A stretch of 63,910 nt of DNA, counting the filler, from Neoconidiobolus thromboides FSU 785 (taxonomy: Eukaryota; Fungi; Entomophthoromycota), in NCBI GenBank assembly GCA_025603075.1. It is 6 parts of 6 records of this genome, joined end to end, with 100 filler letters (N's around TTAATTAATTAA, not from the genome) between each part and the next. Parts side by side here need not be neighbours in the genome. Positions count along the whole stretch, not along the records: positions 23,669 to 44,820 come from MU626545.1; 5 more parts are not named here. One strand, written 5' to 3'. A model generated the notes under the pieces. It worked only from the letters and a program-made list of their open reading frames with translations. It did not search any database and was not told the origin of the DNA. This document shows positions 2,778 through 58,449 of the stretch, piece by piece (within the stretch, counting starts at the first letter, position 1; each line of letters opens with the position of its first letter). The position numbers and the translations under genes are program-made.

Positions 2778-3512
2778 AAAAGAAAGGAGAAATAATAAAT
2801 AGAGCATATTGTGTAGAATTGACAGTCTTTTTGAATGTTTATGTATTTCTAATTTTTAATTTTTAATGATTTAACCCAATAACTTTACAATAACAATTTG
2901 TCCTTTTTTATATCCCTTTTAATTCTATTAATTCATTACCGGTATAATAATACAACAATTAACCAGATAAAGTATTTTCGAAATATTTTAATGTAAAAAA
3001 TGTAGTAATTTAATTAATCAGGGAGTTATTTTATTCAGGTTACTTTGATAGTAATAAATTTGAGTATTTTTATTAATATTGATCTATGGATTTATTAGAT
3101 GATAAAAGTTTTGTAATTTAACACTAGTTTTAATTACTTTAATAAATTTACATAGCCTATATTACTTAGAAACACTATATGCTTTTATATAACATTTAGT
3201 GTTTAGTAATACACTAAAAAATGTTCTATCAATAATTTAAAAATTTAAACAGCATAGAATCAGTGTTCTAATTGGTCATAACAGCATCATAATTTTCTTC
3301 AACAAATTCTCAGTTAATTATAAAGCCGTTAAGTTTTAAATGGCTGACTTTTATTTGCTGCATAAAATGGGTGGCAACTAAATAATTGACCAGTTTTGGA
3401 ACAAAACAAAATATCGATCTTGAGATTTTATCTTACGCTTTATTTTCTTTATTCAATAACTTATAATATATATAAAGAAGCATTTTAATTAAAAAAATAA
3501 CGTTCATTGACT

Positions 3513-6500
3513 ATGAAATCGTTATCTTATAGTACGGAAACATTGGAATCCGTGAGGGCTTTATATGATTACTTTTCATCCGATGAAGCTTCTTTATCGT
3601 TTAAAAAAGGGGAGATAATCAAAGTATTAACTGAACTAGAATCCGGTTGGTGTCAAGGTGAAAAAAATGGGGAAAAAGGATGGTTTCCAAAAAATTTTGT
3701 TGAAAGAATTGATATTGATGATAACCAACGAGCTAGTTTTATGCAAAAATTAAATGGCCAAAATAGTAAGCAGAGTTTAAACTCAATGGATAATGGACAG
3801 GTAAAATAAATTTAGTTTAATAAATTTAATGAATTTAATTTATTATTTAGTTTGATCGAACTAAAAATTGGATAGCTCAAACTATTAAAAGTGAAACTAA
3901 TAATGGATATGAAAAAAGTATTGATAGTATTGAAACTAGTAGTTTAGAGATTAGTAATAAACCACAACAACCTCCAATAGCAAATATTGAAGATTGGCAA
4001 CCTACATCGCCATTTCAGAAACCACTAGAGAATCTAGATATTAATAATACTAATAATAATAATTCAATTATTATAGATAAAATATTACCTAGGTTTTGTC
4101 CACCTGGAAATACATTATCTGAGATTAATTCTTTACCTTTAAATTGGTGTAAAAAAATGACCGCTAATAATAAAATTTATTATTTTAATATGCTAACGGA
4201 TGAGAGTACTTGGAAACTACCAAATATTAATTCAGAAAAAAAGAAGGTAAATAAAATAACGATATTAATATTAAAAAATTAGATTTAAGTTATTATTATA
4301 AATACTAATAACATTTTTTATGTTTTTTAGTTTGAAAAAAGATATTCGATGATGAGTGAACATTCTATTATATCTACATTATCTGATATTACATGGATTA
4401 AATTAATACCAGCTAAAGCCCATCAAACATTATTATATTCATCTGATTTAAATAATGATAATTTGAATTGGGATGGGATTATAAGTAATATAGTTTGTAA
4501 TGTACATAAATTAATTTATACTATAAAAATGCATTCCAAAACCAAGTATTTAAAGAATGCTTCATTAATCGTAGAATCTATTCGAATAATGCTGCTTACT
4601 TCTGGAACAGCAGAAAGTGATTCACCAATATTTAAATCTCATCAATTACTTAAAGGTTATCATCGGTTAATACTACTATCTTTATGTGATTTGGTTTTAA
4701 TGGCAAAAGTAGCTTCAGGTATATGGCCACCACCTGATATGCAAAAAAGATTAGAAAATGAAGCTATTAATATATTGATGTTATCTAGACTATTTGTACA
4801 AGTAGCACAACAAGTTTCTATTAGTTCTAAAATGAAAATAGTTATACCACCAGCTGATCAAACTTATTTACGTCAACAGACTCGCTCTGCTTCTCAAAAT
4901 ATTAATTATCAAATCCATAAAGTAAAGCATTCCAACTCCTCTTATACTAAAGACAGAAGAAATCCAATTAATAATTATAGTTATAATTATAATGAATCTC
5001 GTAGAAGTAGTCATCAAGATATTGAAAGTGAAATTGGCGGGGATCAAAGTCAACAATCAAATACAGAAATATTAAAAAAATTTAATTCAGCTGCACAAAC
5101 AACTTTTAATGCTATTGAAGTATTATCCGAATGTCTTGAAAAAAATAATGATATCAGCCAACAATTAATCAACTTAATTCGAAGAGTAGTTGAAGAAGTT
5201 GGACACTTTGTTAAATTATTAGATCAATTTTCATTAGATAATGTTAGTAGTGAACATGTTGCTATGTTTAATGCCTATCGACAAACTTTATTTGATAATA
5301 TTAATTTATTAGTATTGGTAACAAAAACAATTACTGAAAATTATTCAAAGAATGGAACTGGATCTACAGATCAAATATTAAATAATACAACACGAATTGA
5401 AAAATCAATAAATCATTTATTAATTGCAATTAAATTTGTTTTAGAAGAAAAAGATTTGAAAGAATATAATGAATTACGTCGTAAATTAAACATATTCTCA
5501 ACCATATTAAATAAATCAATAGAAAAACAGACATTAATTGAATTATCTCCACCAATAAGAAGATGTTTCTCCCATTCTTCATTAACTTCATCTATAAATT
5601 CTAATTCTTTTAATTCTCAAACTCAAAAATATCCCATGTATAGTAATGTTAATTTAAAGTATTCAGAAAATGGGTTTGTATCTGGTTCAGATGATGAAAC
5701 AAATGATTCAATAATTAATGGAAGTAATAATAAAGGAGGAGATAATATGTCGCGTATTAATACTCGTCCATCTGATAAACTCAAGAAATTATTAGGTAAA
5801 GAAGTGCCTTTAATGAATAAAGGTCATGGTCCAAAAGATAGTTTAAATAATAAATCAATGGAAGAAAAACCTTGGTTTTTAGGTCATGATTATACTCCAG
5901 ATATGTTAGTATTTGAGAAGAGTAAAGTTAGAGGCGGCACTGCTGAAGGTTTAGTAGAATGTTTAACATTTCATGATAATTTTGGTAACTATTATTTTTT
6001 AATTATCATATTTATGTAATATGTTAACTTATTTTATTTTATTTTAGATCCTAATTTTATGGCTACATTTATGTTAACCTATCGTTCATTTGTTTCAACT
6101 TCTGAATTGTTTCGATTAATATTTAAACGATTTAATTTACCACCCCCACATAATTTATCACAGCCAGAATATGAAATTTGGTTTGAGAAGAAATTAAAAG
6201 TAATTCGAGTAAGAATATTTAATATATTAAAAACATGGGTAGAAAATTATTTTCAAGAAAGTGAAGATATGGAAGCATTAGAGGAATTAAAACAATATGT
6301 ATCAACAATAATGAAAGATATATTACCTCAACAAGCTATTCAGTTATTGAAGCACATTGAAAAAAGATTAGATCCAAAAACAGCTGAATTTAAAAAAATG
6401 GTAAAAAAATCATTAGAAGAGCCAATACCAATATTACCAAAAAATTATGACTCCTTTTTAGATATGGAACCTTTAGAAATTGCAAGGCAATTAACATTAA

Positions 6501-23668: not shown

Positions 23669-23719
23669 ATAAGTAAAAAAGAAATCACTCAATCTAATTA
23701 TTGCTATTTGAAATTAAAA

Positions 23720-23737: not shown

Positions 23738-23796
23738 CACCATTAATTTGTCGATAATTAATCTATATAATATATAAATACCCCAAGTAATTAATA

Positions 23797-24528
23797 ATGA
23801 ACTCAACTTTATTTTTAGTTGTATTCTCTACTTTGACAAGCACCATTACAGCTTTATCCGGTTCTGGTGCAATTACTACTCATCCCTTTCAAGCACAAAG
23901 ATCCATTCTTGAAACATCCCAAGTAGCTTGTGGTATTCCAGCATCTCAAATGAACCTTGATAGAGTTACTGCAGTACAAGGTTTAGACAAATCTCAATGT
24001 GGTACCTGCTTAAAAGTAACCTCAAAACAAAATGGTCTTGTATTATATATTGTTGCTGTTGATATTGGTGGACAAGGTTTGGATATGAATACTGTAGCAT
24101 TTTCACAACTATCAGATGGTGAAACTACTGGCCATGTTGATGTAACTTGGGAATCTACCGATGCTGGTAAATGTGCTGGTGTAATTTTTAGTGGTGATAG
24201 TTCGTTACCTGGTATGCGTACCCAACCTGAAAGCAGTAGTAACCCTAGTAATCCAAGTCACATAGGCTACTCGGTTAAATCTGAAGATGGAAGTAATGAT
24301 AGTGTCAAAGATCAAGTAAAGTTAAAACAAACCACAAAATATAACGAACTGGTTACTGCAGTTCCAAGTTCAAATACAGAACCAACAGATGAATGTGGAG
24401 ATGGTATCTATAGAATGTGTATTTCTGATAAGCGATATGTTACATGTGTTTACAAACAAAGATTTATTGAATCTTGCAATCCAGCATTAACATGTCAAAA
24501 TGCAGGCAATGCAATTCAGTGTGTTTAA
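23797..24528 (+). CDS. Secreted expansin-like/RlpA double-psi beta-barrel protein with C-terminal 6-Cys (CBM19-like) domain
   Basis: Signal peptide; CGTCLKVT...VDIGGQGLDMNTVAFSQL...GHVDVTW; S/P-rich linker; C-terminal 6-Cys module. Confidence 0.8.
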   Translation: MNSTLFLVVFSTLTSTITALSGSGAITTHPFQAQRSILETSQVACGIPASQMNLDRVTAVQGLDKSQCGTCLKVTSKQNGLVLYIVAVDIGGQGLDMNTVAFSQLSDGETTGHVDVTWESTDAGKCAGVIFSGDSSLPGMRTQPESSSNPSNPSHIGYSVKSEDGSNDSVKDQVKLKQTTKYNELVTAVPSSNTEPTDECGDGIYRMCISDKRYVTCVYKQRFIESCNPALTCQNAGNAIQCV

Positions 24529-24827
24529 TCTATATCATCTATATCATCTATATCATCTATAGTATTCTATTTTGGCAATTGATTTGCAATAAAAAAATTA
24601 ATGTTAGCTATTGAGTAATTTCAATATAACTAATATTAATTGTGTTATTTGAAATATTAATAAAACTCTGAACAGTGACTTTAAGATGACTTAATAAACA
24701 ATTAATATACTATAGGTATCATATTTATACTCCTAATATAAGTTAATTAAAATAAGCGCTGTTGATACATTCAGTTTTTTAAATAGAAAGATGTGTAACT
24801 TTACGACTAAGTTTAAAAGAAATATTT

Positions 24828-24921: not shown

Positions 24922-25394
24922 GTTCATTTTTTAATATCAAAACTTGAATTATAATCTTATGTTTTTACTAGGTTTATTTTTATTTCTATACTACTCTACT
25001 AAAAGTAATTTCTGATATAAATTTAAATAATTGCTATATTAACCTTTAAAGTATATATTTTATCATAAGAGTAAACATTACCCAAATAGTTTTTAGCTAT
25101 CTTTTCATCTCCTCAAATATTCCTTTTAAATCTATATAATATTGAGTTATCTAATAGAGTAATAAATTAATTACATTGATTACTTATCCTTAATGGCGTT
25201 TTTCTTGATACTATTTTAAATATTTATTTTATTTAAAGTGTAATTAAATTGATATAATCAATTCCCACTTAATATATTTTTTGTATCAAAATAAAACACT
25301 ATTAAAACGATTTAATAGGCATTTTTATTATATATAACAAGCTTATCATATTTGACTTATTGTATTTGAAAGTAAAAATTGTCGAATATCATAT

Positions 25395-25485
25395 GGGAGT
25401 GTTTTCTTTGGCTTTATTACTTTTTCCACTTTTTAAGCCCTATTTGGGCGGAAAAATTGTTAGTAAAATTCTTAAATGTAAAAAA
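25395..25485 (-). mobile_element. MITE copy lacking one terminus
   Basis: ATAT then GGGAGTG...GGGCGGAAAAATTGTTAGTAAAATTCTT. Confidence 0.8.
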
Positions 25486-25689
25486 ATTAAAGCAATGTAA
25501 ATAACAACAAATGATAAATAGAACTTATTATATTATTAAAAATTAAACATTAATTTCAAATATATATATCTAAACAGTATTAAAATCTGAATACTTTCCT
25601 AAAAAACTCGATCTCTATATATAAAAATAATGAACAAATAAATAAAACGAAAAATAACACTTGATTCCAGTATACTAATATACTAATAT

Positions 25690-25786
25690 GGGGATGTGTT
25701 TTTCTGTTTAAGAATTTACTAACAAATTTTCCGCTTAAATAGCGCTTAAAAAATAGAAAAAATAATGAAGTTAAAAAAACACTCCC
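25690..25786 (+). mobile_element. ~99-bp MITE copy
   Basis: TSD ATAT/ATAT. Confidence 0.92.
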
Positions 25787-26815
25787 ATATCCTTTTTTAT
25801 ATTTAACATAATTTGTGAAACTTGAAAATGAGCTCAATTAATTTAAATTTTTATTTAAATATATTTATAATATAATTTAATAGATAGTTTCATATGGTTC
25901 AACAATAGCCTAAAATAATGCAGGTAGGTAGCTTAATATTGCTTAAAAAATAAATAGTAAACATTTTGTATGATAAGATAACTTGAAATTTAGTCATTCT
26001 TAAGTTGAAAAAACGAGAAAAAAAGCCAAAGTGTGTAACTTTTTGGCTTAGTATATTTTAGTTCCATTTGTCCAAATCTAGAATTTCTATTATTCTACGC
26101 TTCAGTTAAGAGCCATTTTTCTAACAGTTCCAAGTCATTATTTTTGTTTAGTTTTAAAAATAGTAAAATAGTAATAAATAATAATATATGCAATTAACAA
26201 ATAATTCAATATTTGAAATTTTAAACTTACAATTTTATTGAACTTATTTGATAATATCGAATCTTGATAATAGTTTTAATTGATTAAAGGAATACATCTG
26301 GATAAACTAGGAAAATTTACTACAAACATACAAACTTGTAACAATAAAGTCCAAAATAAATTAGGGTTAAAGAATAACGGGGGAATTAAACAGTTCATTG
26401 GCTACATTTGTCTTAACTAAGCCATTGCTTATTGCTTAAAAAACTTATGCTAGCCAATCAAAGTGAATAAATATACCAAATGTAACAATTCATGATTTTC
26501 AACAGTAGAAACCAAAATGCATAAAAAATTGATTCTTTCTTTTTATATATTTTATAAAAAAAAACTGATAACTTTTCATAACTGAATATAACATTTTTGT
26601 GTTTTAAACTTTAAGTTAAATAATTTTTTAAAGCTTTCAATTGTTCAATCTGGCTAAATTTTTAATACTTTTATTATTTTCTTCTTCTTCAATACAAAGT
26701 AAAGATAATTTAAAATCAAAGTTAAGCTCAATACTCTATTTTTAATAACAACTTATATCAATAAACTCAAACAAACTTATAAATCAATTTTAAACCCGTA
26801 TCAATTTCAATCAAT

Positions 26816-27617: not shown

Positions 27618-27940
27618 GTTGTTCATTACGATGGAATTTTAATCTTTTTATTTCTTTATCTTGCTTCTTTTTCAAAGCTTATATTAAAGTCATCTTTTAT
27701 CTAAATTTTTTTTTTGAAGCTTATCAAATTTTTAGATCTTTTTTTTTTTATCAGATTCGTTTTGAAACTTTAAAATAAAAAAATGCTTTTTTAGAAGTAT
27801 AGTTTATTATTAAAATGATTGAAAATAACATCAAACAAAAATATTTTATTTACTAAAAATATACAAAGTTAATTTTATAAATAATAAAAAATACAAGTTT
27901 AAAATTTCCATCCCAATCTAGTTCCCAATTCTCCCCATTT

Positions 27941-29083
27941 TCACTGTCTTAGATTTAAATTCATGTTAAAATTCAACCCTTGATTTATAGCTAACGGTGG
28001 GGGTAATTGTAATTCATTACTATTTCCAGCTTCTTCTATTGAAAACTGATGATATTGATTATTCGAATTATCTCCACTTAAAAAATATGAATTAGCATTA
28101 GAGATGGGTAATGGAATCGAATTCAAACTCGGTAATGAAAGTGAATTAAAGCCCACCGCATTAAAATATTTATTATTTGCTGATGATGAAGATGAGATAG
28201 TATTAGATGGTGGTAACCGGTTACTTGATGAATTAAAACCAAATGTAGTATATTGTTTATAAGCACTAATAGTAGTTGATTCTGGATAATACATTGGCTT
28301 ATTTGAAATTGATTGTGGTGGAAGTGAAAGTGGAAGCTGTGATAGATTAGGTAAAAAAGTAGTCATACTTTTGTTTATATTGGTGTTGTTATTAAAATCA
28401 TTGTTATTATTATCATTATTAATAACAGTACTTTGACTATGACTTTGGGTAAAATTCTTACTCATCACTCTACTTTTTTTCATAAGTAATTCCGTACTCG
28501 TTTTAAAATATTTAGGAATAAGGTGATAAAAATAAGCCCTTGAAATATCAATTAGACCCTTCTGTTTTAACTCAAGATAAATTCGACTTTTTGGCTTTAA
28601 TAAAAAATAACATGGAACTTTTTCACCATTCCAAGAACATTTTTTTTTTAAATTTAATTCTGATTGTTTAATCATATATTCTAATACTTTTTTATCCAAT
28701 ATTTTAACACCTTTTTTTTTCTTTTTGATTACATTTGTGCTACTTATTGAAGTAGAATATCTTTTTTCTTTTTGAATTTTAATAGCCGAAGTATATTGTC
28801 CATTAGAAAACTCAAATCCCAAAGTGTTTAATTGATTTCGTGAAAATAAGCCAGCTACTAAGGCTAGGATATTACTTTTATATTTGCTTTGATTTTGACT
28901 ATGTAATTCATATACCCTATTAACTAATTCATTTAACATCAATACTGATTTTTCAAAATTTAATTTGGGTAATATTGTCATTATGTTTTCAATTCTTGGC
29001 TTCACTTTCTTAATAGGTTTGGAAAGTGTTGGTGCTATAGCCTTGGGATTATTGTTAGGTTGAGCTATAATTGTATTTTCCAT
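27941..29083 (-). CDS. Putative DNA-binding protein derived from a transposase N-terminus, with low-complexity N/S/P tail (ORF A)
   Basis: First ATG at 29083 (the track start 29134 is TTG). NILALVAGLFSRNQLNTLGFEFSNGQY and ISRAYFYHLIPKYFK align with the transposase at 57864-58200. Confidence 0.7.
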   Translation of the reverse strand: MENTIIAQPNNNPKAIAPTLSKPIKKVKPRIENIMTILPKLNFEKSVLMLNELVNRVYELHSQNQSKYKSNILALVAGLFSRNQLNTLGFEFSNGQYTSAIKIQKEKRYSTSISSTNVIKKKKKGVKILDKKVLEYMIKQSELNLKKKCSWNGEKVPCYFLLKPKSRIYLELKQKGLIDISRAYFYHLIPKYFKTSTELLMKKSRVMSKNFTQSHSQSTVINNDNNNNDFNNNTNINKSMTTFLPNLSQLPLSLPPQSISNKPMYYPESTTISAYKQYTTFGFNSSSNRLPPSNTISSSSSANNKYFNAVGFNSLSLPSLNSIPLPISNANSYFLSGDNSNNQYHQFSIEEAGNSNELQLPPPLAINQGLNFNMNLNLRQ

Positions 29084-29230
29084 TATTGAAATTAAATTGT
29101 TGAAACTGAAAGAATAAAATTGAACTGTGCTCAAAATAAATAAAAATAGAGTTGTTTAAAAAATTATGCTTAAAATTGGACACCCTCTTTGCAAATTATG
29201 AAATTTAATTGGTTGCTTCATCTGAATTTG

Positions 29231-30793
29231 TCATCTTTGTTGGTGTAATGAAGTGTTAATAATATTTATATTATTAATAGTAGAAATAATTTCATTATTA
29301 TTATTATTATTATTATTACTGTTATTATTATTATTAGTAATAACATCAGTAGTGATAATATCGTTATTACTTGAAACTATAGAATTAGATTGATTCTTAT
29401 TGTTATTTTCATTATTGATAATGGTAGTACTAGTATTAGTTGAATTAATATTATTTCTATTATCATTATTACTAGTTAAAATCATAGGAGTAATAACATT
29501 ATAATTATTATCATTAACAACACTATTATATTCTCTTACTGAATTGGAATATTTTAATAGTACTAATTTTTTAAATAAACAATTCTCAATTTTTTGCTTC
29601 TTATTTAATGTATCATCACTATCTACATCCAACCCAAAACTTGCTTCCTTGTTCATTGAACTATTTTCTCTTTTATTTAATAACAATTTTTTTTCTTTAT
29701 TCTGCTTAATTTCAATCTCAAAAACAAATTCCTTTTCAGCCTGAATTTTCTTTGCTTGTGTATATTGAGCATTAGAAAACTCAAAACCTAATTGATTTAG
29801 TTGATTTCTTTTAAAACTATCCGCTAACAAAGCCAAAAAACTAGCTTTAAATATCATCTTACATTGACAATGAAATTGATAAACTCGGTCCACTACACCT
29901 TCAATTAATTTGATTATTTTTTCAATATCTAATCGATCAATAATTTCCGCCACATTTTTCAATGTATCTTTCTTTTTTTTGATTTTATTACTTTGATGAG
30001 ATTGATATTCTATATATTTTTTATCTAAAGCAATTTTTTTAGCTTCGGTATATTGATAATTGGAAAATTCAAACCCTAAGTCAACTAGTTGAGTTCTAGA
30101 AAATAAACCCGCAACTAACGAGAGAATATTACTTTTAAATATCGTTTGGGAATGAAAAGTATGAATTCGGATTAATATTGAATTTAAGATAGTAAGCGAT
30201 TTTCCAAGATTTAGAGATGGAAAGATGTTTAATATATTTTCTTCTCGATTTCGATTACCACGACGTTTACGTTTAGTAGGGGATTTTAGAGTTATCAATT
30301 GATCGATATTGAGTGTTTGGGTTGAGTTGGGAAATTCTGAATTATTATTAGGTGGGTCAACTTGATTTATTGTTTCTGTTTCTGCAATTGAGTTATTAGT
30401 CATGATTTTTCGAAGTATTTCTGTTGTAGAATTGAGTTGATAAGATTGATTTGATATCTCTTTTTCTTGGAATCTATTTTTTATTATATTTGTTGAAGTT
30501 GTTTCAACTATATCAGCAGTTTGCTCAGGTTGATCCGATATTTCTGTTTCTTCGGTTGTGTTGGTTATTGTAATTTTTGAAGGCACTTTTGTTGTTTCAT
30601 TACTTTTCTCATTCCCATTTACTAAGGTTATTTCTTGAATTATATTAATTGTTGGGGGGACCTCTGTTATATCGTTGGATTTATTGATTTCCTCTGTTAT
30701 CTCTGTTTCTTTGATTGCTCCATTAGCTTGTTTAGATTGACCTGTTAATTCTAATGCTATATCTGGATTGTCGATTGTGATTGAAGTATCCAT
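29231..30793 (-). CDS. Paralogue of ORF A with two copies of the LVAGLFSR/GFEFSNxQY motif (ORF B)
   Basis: Intact 520-aa ORF with a T/E/N-rich N-terminus, NLS-like PTKRKRR, a duplicated motif and a poly-Asn tail. Confidence 0.75.
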   Translation of the reverse strand: MDTSITIDNPDIALELTGQSKQANGAIKETEITEEINKSNDITEVPPTINIIQEITLVNGNEKSNETTKVPSKITITNTTEETEISDQPEQTADIVETTSTNIIKNRFQEKEISNQSYQLNSTTEILRKIMTNNSIAETETINQVDPPNNNSEFPNSTQTLNIDQLITLKSPTKRKRRGNRNREENILNIFPSLNLGKSLTILNSILIRIHTFHSQTIFKSNILSLVAGLFSRTQLVDLGFEFSNYQYTEAKKIALDKKYIEYQSHQSNKIKKKKDTLKNVAEIIDRLDIEKIIKLIEGVVDRVYQFHCQCKMIFKASFLALLADSFKRNQLNQLGFEFSNAQYTQAKKIQAEKEFVFEIEIKQNKEKKLLLNKRENSSMNKEASFGLDVDSDDTLNKKQKIENCLFKKLVLLKYSNSVREYNSVVNDNNYNVITPMILTSNNDNRNNINSTNTSTTIINNENNNKNQSNSIVSSNNDIITTDVITNNNNNSNNNNNNNNEIISTINNINIINTSLHQQR

Positions 30794-31220
30794 TCCTCAT
30801 AAAATTCGTTATTATATGTTATATTGTTTTTTTACAATTAAAAAATTAGAAAATTAAAAAGAGATGAATAAAAATCTTAATTCCTTTAAAATATTGAATG
30901 AGATTCTATATCATGTTTTTAGTATGAATTGAAGATTAGCTTTTGATAATTTTCAAAAGAAATGCATCTAAAGTTATAAAAGGACAAAACGTTAATAAAA
31001 ATAAGTTTATTTTGAGTTAATATTAAATTGATTATAAATGTATATAAACTATATTCACTTTAATTAAATGACATTACAACTAATCATCACTTTTTAATAA
31101 CTGAATATTATTGGTTCTGAGAAAGTTAATGAGTAATCAAAAAAGTAGTAAAAGCAATATGTAAAAAGATTAAAACAACTTTTTTATTATTATTATTATT
31201 TTCAATAAATAGTAAAAAAG

Positions 31221-34813: not shown

Positions 34814-34910
34814 GGGAATGTTTTTTTGATTGCATTATTTTTCCATTTTTTAAGCGCTATTTGAGTAGAAAAATTGTTAGTAAAATTCTTGAACATAAAA
34901 AAACATCCCT
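34814..34910 (-). mobile_element. ~99-bp MITE copy
   Basis: TSD ATTT/ATTT. Confidence 0.9.
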
Positions 34911-40516: not shown

Positions 40517-40624
40517 GAGAATGTTTTTTTTGACTTCGTTATTTTTTCCATTTTTTAAGTGCTATTTGAGCTGGAAAATTTGTTAGTAAAATTCTTAAAT
40601 ACAAAAATACAAAAATACATCCCC
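40517..40624 (-). mobile_element. MITE copy with small internal duplication
   Basis: TSD AATT/AATT; duplicated AAAATAC unit. Confidence 0.9.
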
Positions 40625-40854: not shown

Positions 40855-40946
40855 GGGTGCTTTCTTTGGTTTCATCACTTTTTCCTTTTTTCAGGTGTTA
40901 TTGAGGGGGGAAGAAGTTAGTGAATTTCTTAAACAAAAGACATTCC
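40855..40946 (-). mobile_element. Degenerate MITE copy
   Basis: GGGTGCTTTCTTTGGTTTCATCACTTTTTCC...GTTAGTGAATTTCTTAAACAAAAGACATTCC. Confidence 0.65.
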
Positions 40947-42208
40947 ATTGTCACCAAGTAATCAAATTGGTGACGGCTTCATAGTTTCCACTCTTTTTCA
41001 CTCTTGGGTTGGGTTGTATAATTTAGAGTCTGACTCTATGAAATTAAACCTACTCAAGTCTAAAACAGACGAAACCCAGTTGATTGATTTCCAAGTTATT
41101 TTTTAGGTCCTTTCTTTTATTCGACTAGCTCCTAATTCATCTAAAAAAAGGCATCCTCATTTGACAGTTCTTTTAGTGTCTTGTTTGCACAATCTGAAGA
41201 TTTTTAATAAATTATTATACAAGGTTTCATATAAGATATAAATCAATACTTTACTTATAACTCAAACCTAAATTTCATAAAAAATTTAAATATTCAACCA
41301 AGTAGAAATTTTAATAATTGATAGTTCCTGTAAAATGAATAAAGAGTTCGCTATATTATGGATAAATTACTATTTAGCCAGTATAAATTTATTTCATTTA
41401 AAACATGATAAAACATTTTACAAATTTGTATACTATATACTATAACAAAAATAAAGTTAATAGATCGAATTTAAAATGTGACAAAAATGTTAACTCGTTT
41501 ATATAACATTTTATCGTAGTGTTAGATACATCTTTTTAATAAGAAGTTTGATCAGAATAAACTGTTTGAATATAAATAAAGTGACTATGAGTTTAAGCCG
41601 ATACCAAGATACTCCATGAAAGGAGTTACTCAGTATAGCTTACTAATCATTTTATAGATAGCCAGCTACTAGGTAAGTTTAGAAGAATGCATGAAGAGGT
41701 AAGGAAGTAGGTCAAGCTATTCAAGTAACAACTATCTTTGTAATGTAAAATAATGTTTTAAAATTGAGATGGTTTTTATTTTGAATTAGTAAAAAGCTTA
41801 TTATTTTATAGATTAGTATACAGACAAAAACAATCTTAGTATAAGTATAAAATTAGAATATAAAGATTTGATAATTTTAATGTAAATATACTTTTCTAAA
41901 TCTAAGCTGCGAATTTCAATATCATTATAGATAGGAATAAAATGCTAAAACCTTTTCTTTTATTTTCGGTTAATCTTTACAAGATTAGTAAACTTGATTT
42001 GTTATATATTAACATAAGTAACATAATATTTATAATACATTAAGTATTCCACATTAATTACTCTAAAATTAATATTGAAATTGAATTTATTAATGCTTTA
42101 ACAATTAACATATATTAATTACGTAAAAATTCTATAATAACTAGTATCATTAAATATCTTTATTATAACAAATCAATTGTCAAAGTAGAGCACTATGGTT
42201 AGTATATA

Positions 42209-42970
42209 TTAAACACATTGAATTGCATCACCTGCATTTTTACATGTTAATGCTGGATTACAAGACTCAATAAATCTTTGTTTATGAACACATGAAACAT
42301 ATTGCTTATCAGAGATACACTTCTTGTAAATACCAGCTCCACATTCATCAGTTGGTTTATCGTATGAAGCGTCTTTTGAGGTACCCTTTGGTATATCTTT
42401 TGGTGTATGGCTTGGTTTATGTGATTTTTGTGACTTTGGGCTTTCTTCTTCTTCTTCTTCTTCTTCAAAACCATTTCCATCTTCATCTTCTGATTTTACT
42501 GGCTTCTCAGGCTTAGATTCGGAGGTTTCAGCTCCAGGCTCAGTACGCATACCAGGTAATTCAGCATCGCCACTAGTAATTACACCAGCGCATTTACCAG
42601 CATCGGTAGATTCCCAAGTTACATCAACATGGCCAGTAGTTTCACCATCTGATAGTTGTGAAAATGCTACAGTATTCATATCCAAACCTTGTCCACCAAT
42701 ATCAACAGCAACAATATATAATACAAGACCATTTTGTTTTGAGGTTACTTTTAAGCAGGTACCACATTGAGATTTGTCTAAACCTTGTACTGCAGTAACT
42801 CTATCAAGGTTCATTTGAGATGCTGGAATACCACAAGCTACTTGGGATGTTTCAAGAATGGATCTTTGTTCTTGGTATGGATGGGTACTGATTGGGCCAG
42901 AACCAGATAAAGCTGTAATATTGCTCATCAATGCAGAAAATGCGATTAGAAATAAGGTTGGTTTCATCAT
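42209..42970 (-). CDS. Second secreted expansin-like DPBB + 6-Cys protein (paralogue of 23797-24528)
   Basis: Same architecture with an acidic poly-Glu linker; core identical to the first copy at the DNA level. Confidence 0.82.
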   Translation of the reverse strand: MMKPTLFLIAFSALMSNITALSGSGPISTHPYQEQRSILETSQVACGIPASQMNLDRVTAVQGLDKSQCGTCLKVTSKQNGLVLYIVAVDIGGQGLDMNTVAFSQLSDGETTGHVDVTWESTDAGKCAGVITSGDAELPGMRTEPGAETSESKPEKPVKSEDEDGNGFEEEEEEEESPKSQKSHKPSHTPKDIPKGTSKDASYDKPTDECGAGIYKKCISDKQYVSCVHKQRFIESCNPALTCKNAGDAIQCV

Positions 42971-43468
42971 TTTAGTTAGTTGGGTTTGATGTATGTTATA
43001 AAAAATTAATTAATGATAATCAATAGTATTACTTCCAGAGTAATAAATTTTATTTTAAAATAATATTATATAAGTTGAATGCTTCTTTTTTCTTATATAT
43101 ACGTCTCTTTGTAACTTTTCTATGGCTTTGGTATCTTGGCAATTTCTTGTTATGTAATTAATTATATTTTTACAATTACCTTGTTTGATCAAATTTGCAT
43201 TAAATTGTGACCCATCCTTGGAATTAAATTTATTATATATATTGAATTTCAGTCAATAGGTAAATGTTACAGCTATTTGATCAGTCTTAAATATAATTAT
43301 TTACTAAATAAGCCATCGAAAAGTTATAACTTTTATTTTCAATAGAGTAAATAATAACCTAATGAATAAGAGCTCTAGGTGATATGATGCAATTAATTTA
43401 ATTCTAAACTTCGAACAATAATAAATTAAGATGAACTTAAAACTAAAAATTGGCTTACTAATCCATAT

Positions 43469-57250: not shown

Positions 57251-58449
57251 TGTTACTTATTATGATCAGAATATATGCTCATAAACTTAAAAATAAATTT
57301 TCGTATGATATTAGTTTACATCGCTCCTTTCACATATTTAAAGTGAATTAATTTTAAAAGTAACTATGAGAGGCTATCCTAATTGGTTTCAGAATTTAGA
57401 AATTAATCCAAATTTTAAAATTTTAAATTTGTGTCTAATATGATGGTTAAATCTAAAAAGCCTAAAATTAAATCTCTCTACTTAAACTTATTTTAATTAT
57501 TTCCTTTTCTTAAATAGCTAATTTTCCTAACTATATGTTTTGTTAGTTGTGTTAGATATTTAATAGATATAATATATAACTATATGATTATGTAATTATA
57601 TAAATACAGTTAGTTGACTTTATTTTTCGTTGAAGTAGAAATAAAAATAAAATGCAAACTTTCATAACTAAACATCGAAATGGAATTTTTGAAAATTTCA
57701 TTACAATAGGGAGGAGTACACAATATAAACATTGTAAGTCATTCACATCAATTTTAAGAGCTAATTATAACAATCCAAGGCTTATGTAATTTTATAATAA
57801 AACAAAAAGAGGAAAGATATACTATCAAAGTTTACTATCGATAATAATAAACTTAATCAACCAATGTATAAAATTAGTGCTTTAAGGGAAACAGGAAACA
57901 AAAACCAACAAGTAGCATTATTATCAACTATAGCTTCAGTATATTCTTTTGATGAATGTAAAAATATTGGGTTTAATATAAATAGAAATCAATATGATTA
58001 TTCAAAAATAAGTAATAATAATAAAATATCAACATTACAACTTATTATTAAAAATACAAAAAAAATCAAAGACTAGCAAATTGAAACTATTATACAATAT
58101 TTAATAAATCAATGATATATAGTAAATATTTTAATGATCTAAAAGATAAAGCAGTAGCTAGGTCAACATTTTTTAAATATATACCAAGTGATTTCAAAAA
58201 TCCAGCAAGAAAAACGGATCTATGTAATATATGTGCTCAGTATACAGTTAGAAAAAAGTTATTTGAAAATAAAATAAATACAGCAATTAAAAAACAAAGC
58301 AGAGAGATAGAAGAAATTTTCAATGAAGAAGAAAAATTATACAAATTACATAAATTCTGTGTTGATACTCAAAAAAACACATTTAATGAAACTATTAAAA
58401 AATTAAATAATAGAAGTTGTATAATGATTTTAGATTTTAAACAAAATAT

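Follow-up and report, generated by a model that had tools for sequence, protein, structure and literature searches.

New transcription factors are known to arise from transposase DNA-binding domains, with examples from a handful of well-studied superfamilies and mostly from animals and plants: the paired domain of Pax proteins came from Tc1/mariner, CENP-B and its relatives from pogo, and THAP proteins from P elements. We analysed a 63,910-nt stretch of DNA (the window) from the fungus Neoconidiobolus thromboides FSU 785, made of six joined parts, in which positions 23669–44820 are the entire contig MU626545.1 of assembly GCA_025603075.1 (21,152 nt, ~25% GC). On the minus strand of this contig lie two adjacent, intact, intron-less reading frames, each annotated as a single-exon gene: open reading frame (ORF) A (27941–29083; protein P0001; 380 aa from the first ATG) and ORF B (29231–30793; protein P0002; 520 aa). 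We consider it probable that both descend from a cut-and-paste transposase and are now host genes, retaining only its N-terminal module.

The pair resembles the established Pax, CENP-B and THAP domestications in that a putative N-terminal DNA-binding part is kept while the nuclease is lost, without terminal inverted repeats (TIRs), and in being an expressed locus at single-copy depth, with signs of purifying selection and with new acidic or Q/N/S/P-rich regions attached. It differs in its source, a barely characterised transposase family whose module has no Pfam model, and in the combination of a tandem duplication with an internal subdomain duplication. The phenomenon, domestication of a DNA-binding domain, is a familiar one; the source is an under-described transposase family.

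A preliminary description of this DNA had proposed that both frames arose from a transposase N-terminus and had placed them at these coordinates; translation and annotation agree on position, strand and unbroken frames. At 25% GC, base composition makes ~9% of random codons stops, so chance alone could hardly leave 380 or 520 codons open.

Homology to transposases was found at a distance. Word-index protein searches with ORF A, whole or module only, returned ORF A alone, but phmmer with ORF A residues 30–215 as query against 1.84 billion representative proteins yielded ORF B and 22 other relatives (E 8.6e-12 to 1e-3), most aligning across both subdomains of the module, which is ~30% identical between ORF A and the transposase relatives. 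In nine of these (P0003, P0004, P0006, P0008, P0011, P0015, P0018, P0022 and P0023) the module end ...CPKNFKK runs on into a cysteine motif, K.TD.C..C, and four (P0003, P0004, P0008 and P0015) reach DFK(Q/E)NFKIGGGPVE after a helical stretch. Module and catalytic core were contiguous by tblastn in five fetched loci (L002, L003, L005, L006 and L007). The most complete is L007, where P0003 and a 261-aa ORF beginning 62 nt past the end of the P0003 ORF make up a near-complete transposase with D, D and E motifs MDFKQN, FWSDCGPHFRS and FFTEYHGKSLVDGHFG; L005, from Smittium angustum, has the same module–core order with an assembly gap between. A fragment-alignment search added only P0025 and P0026, the latter overlapping P0008 at 61% identity and continuing via IWADGGKHFRS and FIEYHGKSRLDGHFG, with a spacing of ~33 residues, counted from the sequence, between the second D and the E.

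Scored against a family profile built without the window’s own rows, ORF A residues 49–198 gave 112 bits and the two module copies of ORF B gave 55.6 and 50.5 bits. The transposase strings quoted in the preliminary description, from ORFs at 57864 and 58112 beyond contig MU626545.1, fit family profile A3 where they should, with 21.2 bits at positions 40–65 and 8.5 bits at 148–161. ORF A tracks the transposases up to ...IPKYFK, which aligns with their ...FYKLCPKNFK, and diverges exactly where K.TD.C..C begins; the earlier statement that similarity stops just before the CxxC and the core thus holds. No catalytic core was found on the whole of contig MU626545.1 with five core queries (tblastn, best E 0.56). 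The significant homology to transposase-type proteins of other genomes supports, at the level of sequence, the view that both ORFs descend from a DDE transposase family, of which they keep the N-terminal module but neither the CxxC motif nor the catalytic core.

The two genes share a basic module of ~80 aa, present once in ORF A and twice in ORF B, with the common motif ...MH..K.KS.ILSLVAG.FSR.QL..LGFEFSN.QYT.A.KI...; tblastn of the contig found exactly these three copies and none further. It is strongly basic (isoelectric point, pI, 10.0 in ORF A and 9.8 in ORF B). In ORF A, subdomain 1 (28766–28984, minus strand, residues ~34–106) is helical and helix-turn-helix (HTH)-like, with the motif MH..K.KS.ILSLVAG..SR..L...GF.FSN.QY visible in the alignments. 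Subdomain 2 (28499–28738, minus strand, residues ~116–195), with a helix, a beta-hairpin and two helices in a winged-helix-like order, carries the second conserved stretch, which reads ...YFLLKPKSRIYLELK...ISRAYFYHLIPKYFK and ends ...FYHLIPKYFK. Beyond it the N/S/P/Q-rich tail (27944–28498, minus strand, residues 196–380), which the translated sequence confirms as replacing the core, has no cysteine motif.

ORF B, also on the minus strand, is built differently. Its N-terminal region (30284–30793, residues 1–170) is acidic and T/E/I/N-rich, with a pI of 4.2, and is followed by the KRKRR cluster that the preliminary description had called similar to a nuclear localisation signal, present at residues 174–178 (30260–30274), where it may direct nuclear import. 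Next come copy 1 of the module (29963–30244, residues ~184–277; 47% identity to ORF A, BLASTP E 2e-21; 55.6 bits) and copy 2 (29663–29962, residues ~278–377; 41% identity, E 1e-22; 50.5 bits), so that the reported doubling of the first motif is seen both by BLASTP and as two profile matches. Each copy consists of subdomain 1 only, and no significant remnant of subdomain 2 was detected after copy 2 (score 33 versus a shuffle mean of 28.6, p=0.19). An N-rich, low-complexity tail (29234–29662, residues 378–520) completes the protein. Neither ORF, tails included, matches any Pfam family.

An AlphaFold2 model of ORF A residues 25–215, made with alignment A3, has a mean predicted local distance difference test (pLDDT) score of 87.9 and resolves into two subdomains with a basic linker between them: model residues 10–82 are helical (pLDDT 87–98), and model residues 92–171 form a helix/beta-hairpin/two-helix unit (pLDDT 81–97). 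With VIA-align, subdomain 1 matched the HTH domains of ParB/Spo0J and KorB (Z 4.2–5.5), and subdomain 2 matched Fur, ArgR, sigma54, Spo11/TopoVI-A and the winged helix of the P-element transposase (Z 4.4–5.7), all below the tool’s confidence level. Foldseek of the module model against the PDB returned nothing at E<=0.001 and a sequence-profile search of the PDB nothing below E 0.08. AlphaFold DB clusters match model residues ~17–173 with probability 1.00 and E values down to 1.6e-8, in many uncharacterised proteins of 200–1200 aa, and an Atlas shape search with the module found a 757-aa arthropod cluster (template modelling (TM) score 0.50) and a small bacterial cluster of PF07592, ISAzo13 (TM 0.35/0.43).

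From the plan of the fold, the charge and the position within the transposase, we infer that the module may bind DNA. Two small subdomains with a basic linker, set ahead of a catalytic domain, recall IS630 and Tc1/mariner transposases, but the module has no sequence match to the Pfam HTH families of those groups and the structural scores are low (TM 0.26–0.33, Z <=5.7); in the models, the parallel is a resemblance of plan that falls short of membership.

As to the source family, the AlphaFold2 model of P0008 (pLDDT 72.6) contains the module; past the CxxC comes a long helical hairpin, followed by a beta-beta-beta-alpha-beta arrangement, which in this model is the beginning of an RNase-H-like fold; its weak PDB neighbours by Foldseek were IstA, Mos1, HIV integrase, RNase H and PIWI, none at E 0.001. 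Among its Atlas shape neighbours were eukaryotic clusters of 506–762 aa (Zoopagomycota, Rotifera and Arthropoda), DUF7869, ISAzo13 and IS630, the last carrying HTH_23, winged HTH_33 and DDE_3; compared directly with ISAzo13, the P0008 model gave TM 0.26/0.41. In an Atlas feature search, P0026 scored 0.96 against clusters of PF25273 (DUF7869), which made up 63/100 matches, and ISAzo13 (PF07592) transposases occur among the structure neighbours of its top Atlas match (TM 0.49–0.52, for that proxy model). Sequence profiles gave no such match: hmmscan of P0025, P0026 and the core ORFs of L007 and L005 at a maximum E value of 1–10 (its filters drop most matches above ~0.1) detected no PF07592 or PF25273, and Pfam matched no family in these core ORFs or in twelve relatives (P0003, P0004, P0006, P0008–P0010, P0015, P0018–P0020, P0025 and P0026). 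A literature search on DUF7869 found no paper, and no TIRs of the L007 element were found within its metagenome contig. The eukaryotic Zator superfamily is a relative of ISAzo13, and both make 3-bp target-site duplications (PMC10045372). On Atlas features and TM scores of ~0.5 we tentatively place the source family as DUF7869/ISAzo13-like, probably Zator-like. The whole two-part module of ORF A is homologous to that of these transposases (L007, L005, P0008, P0015 and P0026) at ~30% identity, whereas ORF A and ORF B lack their CxxC, helical linker, DDE core and TIRs, and show no signs of multiple copies on the contig or in read depth. At the end of the metagenome contig that codes for P0008, L002:1072–1278, an opposite-strand core match overlaps the forward match; this end is probably a fold-back assembly artefact, which makes the last ~40 residues of P0008 unreliable.

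A maximum-likelihood tree built from module sequences groups ORF A with the two ORF B copies (support 91/97) at the end of a long stem; the other 22 sequences are largely unresolved, save for P0009 with P0010 (100/100). The grouping of the three copies implies that the tandem and internal duplications postdate the split from the sampled transposases. The history may be read as follows. The source transposase starts with the two-part module, continues with the CxxC and a long helical stretch and ends in a DDE core of RNase-H-like type; the gene would have been truncated after the module, become fixed in the host and then been tandemly duplicated, after which one copy, ORF B, would have gained its second subdomain 1 by internal duplication and shed subdomain 2. 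The products are most likely nuclear, sequence-specific DNA-binding proteins, which would carry disordered effector regions and might act as transcription regulators or as binders of the ancestral transposon ends.

Among the 1.84 billion representative proteins, none outside the window was closer than ~32% identity across the whole module, and P0001 and P0002 are each the sole member of their 90% cluster. Three relatives are nonetheless module-only genes like ORF A. P0020 (493 aa), whose similarity ends at ...FYRYIPKNFR with low complexity after it, lies between kinase and Iso_dh genes in a neighbourhood that also holds cytochrome c and GATA genes; the identical protein and gene order occur in two Harpellales-type assemblies, one of them Smittium angustum. 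P0009 and P0010 (GCA_027576915.1 and GCA_025201845.1) are orthologue-like module-only genes among host genes; upstream of each is a CN_hydrolase-domain gene, directly adjacent in L004 and at a distance of two genes in L010. A search for a core in the fetched flanks covered P0020 (L008) and P0009 (L004), though not the P0010 locus, L010, and detected none. The family had been described as lineage-specific, which is borne out in part: the protein search detected nothing closer than ~32% identity outside the window, but module-only genes occur in S. angustum and two other fungal-type assemblies. Domestication may be recurrent, or may be older than the preliminary description assumed.

These genes raise the alternative that one older host family, domesticated a single time in the distant past, includes both the Kickxellomycotina-type P0020, P0009 and P0010 and, as fast-evolving members, ORF A and ORF B. 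All three share with ORF A the module, the end point before the CxxC (after ...FY.L.PKN(F/Y)K), low-complexity flanks or tails and a host neighbourhood. Faint tail resemblances also exist: of two short stretches near the end of the ORF A tail (residues ~334–366, 27944–28120), one aligns with P0020, FLSGDNSNNQYHQFS against FLNGNETNQFFEKFS, at E 0.066, and the other with P0009, NSNELQLPPPLAI against NSDDIPFPLPMPM, at E 2.6, neither being significant. However, identity to ORF A is ~30–35%, the neighbouring genes differ between loci, and the N-terminal helix pair that P0009, P0010, P0020 and the transposases keep is not recognisable in ORF A. The tree lends no support to a shared origin, joining A/B with neither P0020 nor P0009/P0010, although its backbone is unresolved and the A/B stem long. 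We regard a single ancient domestication as unlikely.

Expression and constraint bear on whether the frames are genes at all. The runs compared, DNA run X5 and RNA runs X2, X6 and X9, represent strains or near relatives and no other species. RNA contigs of X2, X6 and X9 cover both ORFs, so that both are transcribed, as the preliminary description had proposed to check by RNA sequencing. Those of X2, which bears the label of the probable source organism, span 28016–29283 and 29354–30792 with zero differences from the window, and X2 depth drops to 28 downstream of ORF A and to 0 upstream of ORF B. The X2 library is taken as genuine RNA because a 50-nt GT..AG intron of the neighbouring gene is spliced out; no splice joints were seen within ORF A or ORF B in the RNA contigs. 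One X2 contig runs unbroken from ORF A through the 147-nt spacer to the ORF B 3′ end (29134–29283), so that the two transcripts may overlap or be read through; spacer depth was ~1 in X6 and X9.

X5, X6 and X9 also contain, across 27934–30279, a second form that differs from the reference by ~7%, chiefly through transitions, at a depth like that of the reference form. It is absent from X2, a pattern that points to strains which are heterozygous or hybrid, or else to a recent duplication. The 3′ flank of the second form is still recognisably homologous. We compared the two forms using the 40 best-supported of 168 listed differences, with an expectation that takes in the observed transition bias. 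In 37 changed codons, 22 changes were synonymous and 15 non-synonymous, against 68% non-synonymous expected (ratio of non-synonymous to synonymous change, omega, ~0.32, p=0.0005); omega was ~0.24 in the module part of ORF A for the same listed variants. Both indels of the second haplotype in the ORF A tail, of 6 nt and 12 nt, are in frame. The proposed test of dN/dS was answered in part, by omega ~0.32 between two haplotypes for a listed subset of variants, and for these variants the sequences support purifying selection.

We think it very unlikely that a decayed transposon left these ORFs behind without function, open by chance and incidentally transcribed. Such leftovers would fit the missing catalytic part, the low-complexity tails and the 1-nt deletion at 28505 in one variant contig. 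They would not be expected to hold open frames of this length at 25% GC, to show a synonymous excess and in-frame indels, to give discrete transcripts between silent flanks, to keep the conserved module residues in all three copies, or to be duplicated with both genes retained.

The preliminary description had seen no TIRs around the ORFs, and our search around either ORF and around the pair likewise found nothing beyond AT-rich noise: low-complexity inverted matches of 71–85% complementarity, none at a plausible boundary. In X5, DNA depth was 39–64 across the ORFs versus 24–54 across the flanks, and two contigs (27620–28357 and 30368–31020) span both gene–flank junctions with one difference each. 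These data support a fixed locus, at single-copy depth and in a host-gene context.

This setting also bears on another reading, in which the ORFs belong to a still mobile transposon, non-autonomous or internally deleted, and encode truncated transposases that repress transposition, as the KP repressor of the P element does. Loss of all but the DNA-binding region is the classic repressor architecture; units resembling miniature inverted-repeat transposable elements (MITEs), with GGGRRTGT ends, lie on the same contig. A KP-like element is, however, hard to reconcile with the absence of TIRs around either ORF or the pair, with DNA depth equal to that of flanking host genes and with the junctions kept in X5. 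Identity of the module to every transposase found is moreover only ~30%, and its stem in the tree is long, which points to an old event and not a recent deletion derivative; we judge a mobile repressor element to be very unlikely. The reverse direction, in which an ancient host DNA-binding domain was captured by a transposase family, has nothing specific in its favour beyond the fact that pairwise similarity alone cannot give the direction of transfer, and it is barely credible given that the module is commonly joined to the core in the fetched fungal and metagenome loci, that related Atlas clusters of 432–762 aa are labelled Cnidaria, Mollusca, Rotifera, Arthropoda, Mucoromycota or Zoopagomycota, that AlphaFold DB holds the module in proteins of 200–1200 aa, that a bacterial ISAzo13-family cluster matches its shape (TM 0.35/0.43), and that module-only genes are few and scattered.

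Domestication of a transposase-derived module had been the central proposal of the preliminary description, and it is supported by the homology, the lost core, the intact frames, the transcription, the syntenic locus at single-copy depth and the synonymous excess. Several points weigh against it. The HTH and winged-helix structural matches are weak (Z <=5.7) and the Foldseek search of the PDB was empty; module and core match no Pfam model, and the link to DUF7869, ISAzo13 and Zator comes from Atlas features and TM scores of ~0.5. No orthologue in another species was recovered among the 1.84 billion representative proteins. Copy number was judged from the 21-kb contig and read depth. The selection test used 40 of 168 differences, and the second haplotype may be an allele, a hybrid parent’s copy or a recent paralogue; the 1-nt deletion at 28505 lies just past the module, in an X9 RNA contig of this divergent form.

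ORF A and ORF B add a case of domestication from a transposase group without a curated N-terminal domain model, in an AT-rich fungal-type eukaryote. Their history would be readable as truncation, tandem duplication and internal duplication of one subdomain, with parallel module-only genes in other fungi. A widespread, unnamed two-subdomain module is now defined, for which a family model could be built, and the pair offers a concrete case for asking whether a domesticated binder still targets its ancestor’s MITEs.

The MITE-like family on contig MU626545.1 consists of ~95-nt units whose ends are inverted (GGGAGTGT... ...ACATCCCC, giving GGGRRTGT termini), at 25393–25789, 34821–34903, 40526–40624 and 40861–40943. 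The first of these intervals holds two units in inverted orientation, ~200 nt apart, with ATAT on either side of the whole. The sequence GGGGWTGT occurs 3 times in 23669–44820 versus 0.36 expected. A further proposal, which we put forward as quite doubtful, is that the module has been recruited repeatedly and independently as a nuclear DNA binder among early-diverging fungi (this genome, Harpellales and Kickxellales-type genomes) and that ORF A and ORF B still bind the resident MITEs at their GGGRRTGT ends. If that were true, the dispersed MITEs would form a ready-made network of binding sites, for transposon silencing or for regulating nearby genes.

The surrounding genes are of ordinary host type by annotation and Pfam: an ODC antizyme gene lies directly downstream of ORF A, and PIG-U, WD40 protein and GMC oxidoreductase genes lie upstream of ORF B. 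A cerato-platanin-like gene stands at either end of the contig. These cerato-platanin/barwin-like genes (23793–24543 and 42194–42971) form an inverted duplication ~18 kb apart, with 437 nt at 92% and 164 nt at 86% complementarity, and bracket the entire gene block, ORF A and ORF B included.

Two side observations come from the fetched loci. In L003, the contig of GCA_003086715.1 with the transposase fragment P0015, positions 2860–4071 encode a 403-aa protein whose Rep domain is of geminivirus type (Gemini_AL1); this gene is 2 kb from P0015. Beside the near-complete transposase of L007, a Tc1/mariner-like transposase ORF pair occupies L007:3261–4071, marking a transposon-rich spot.

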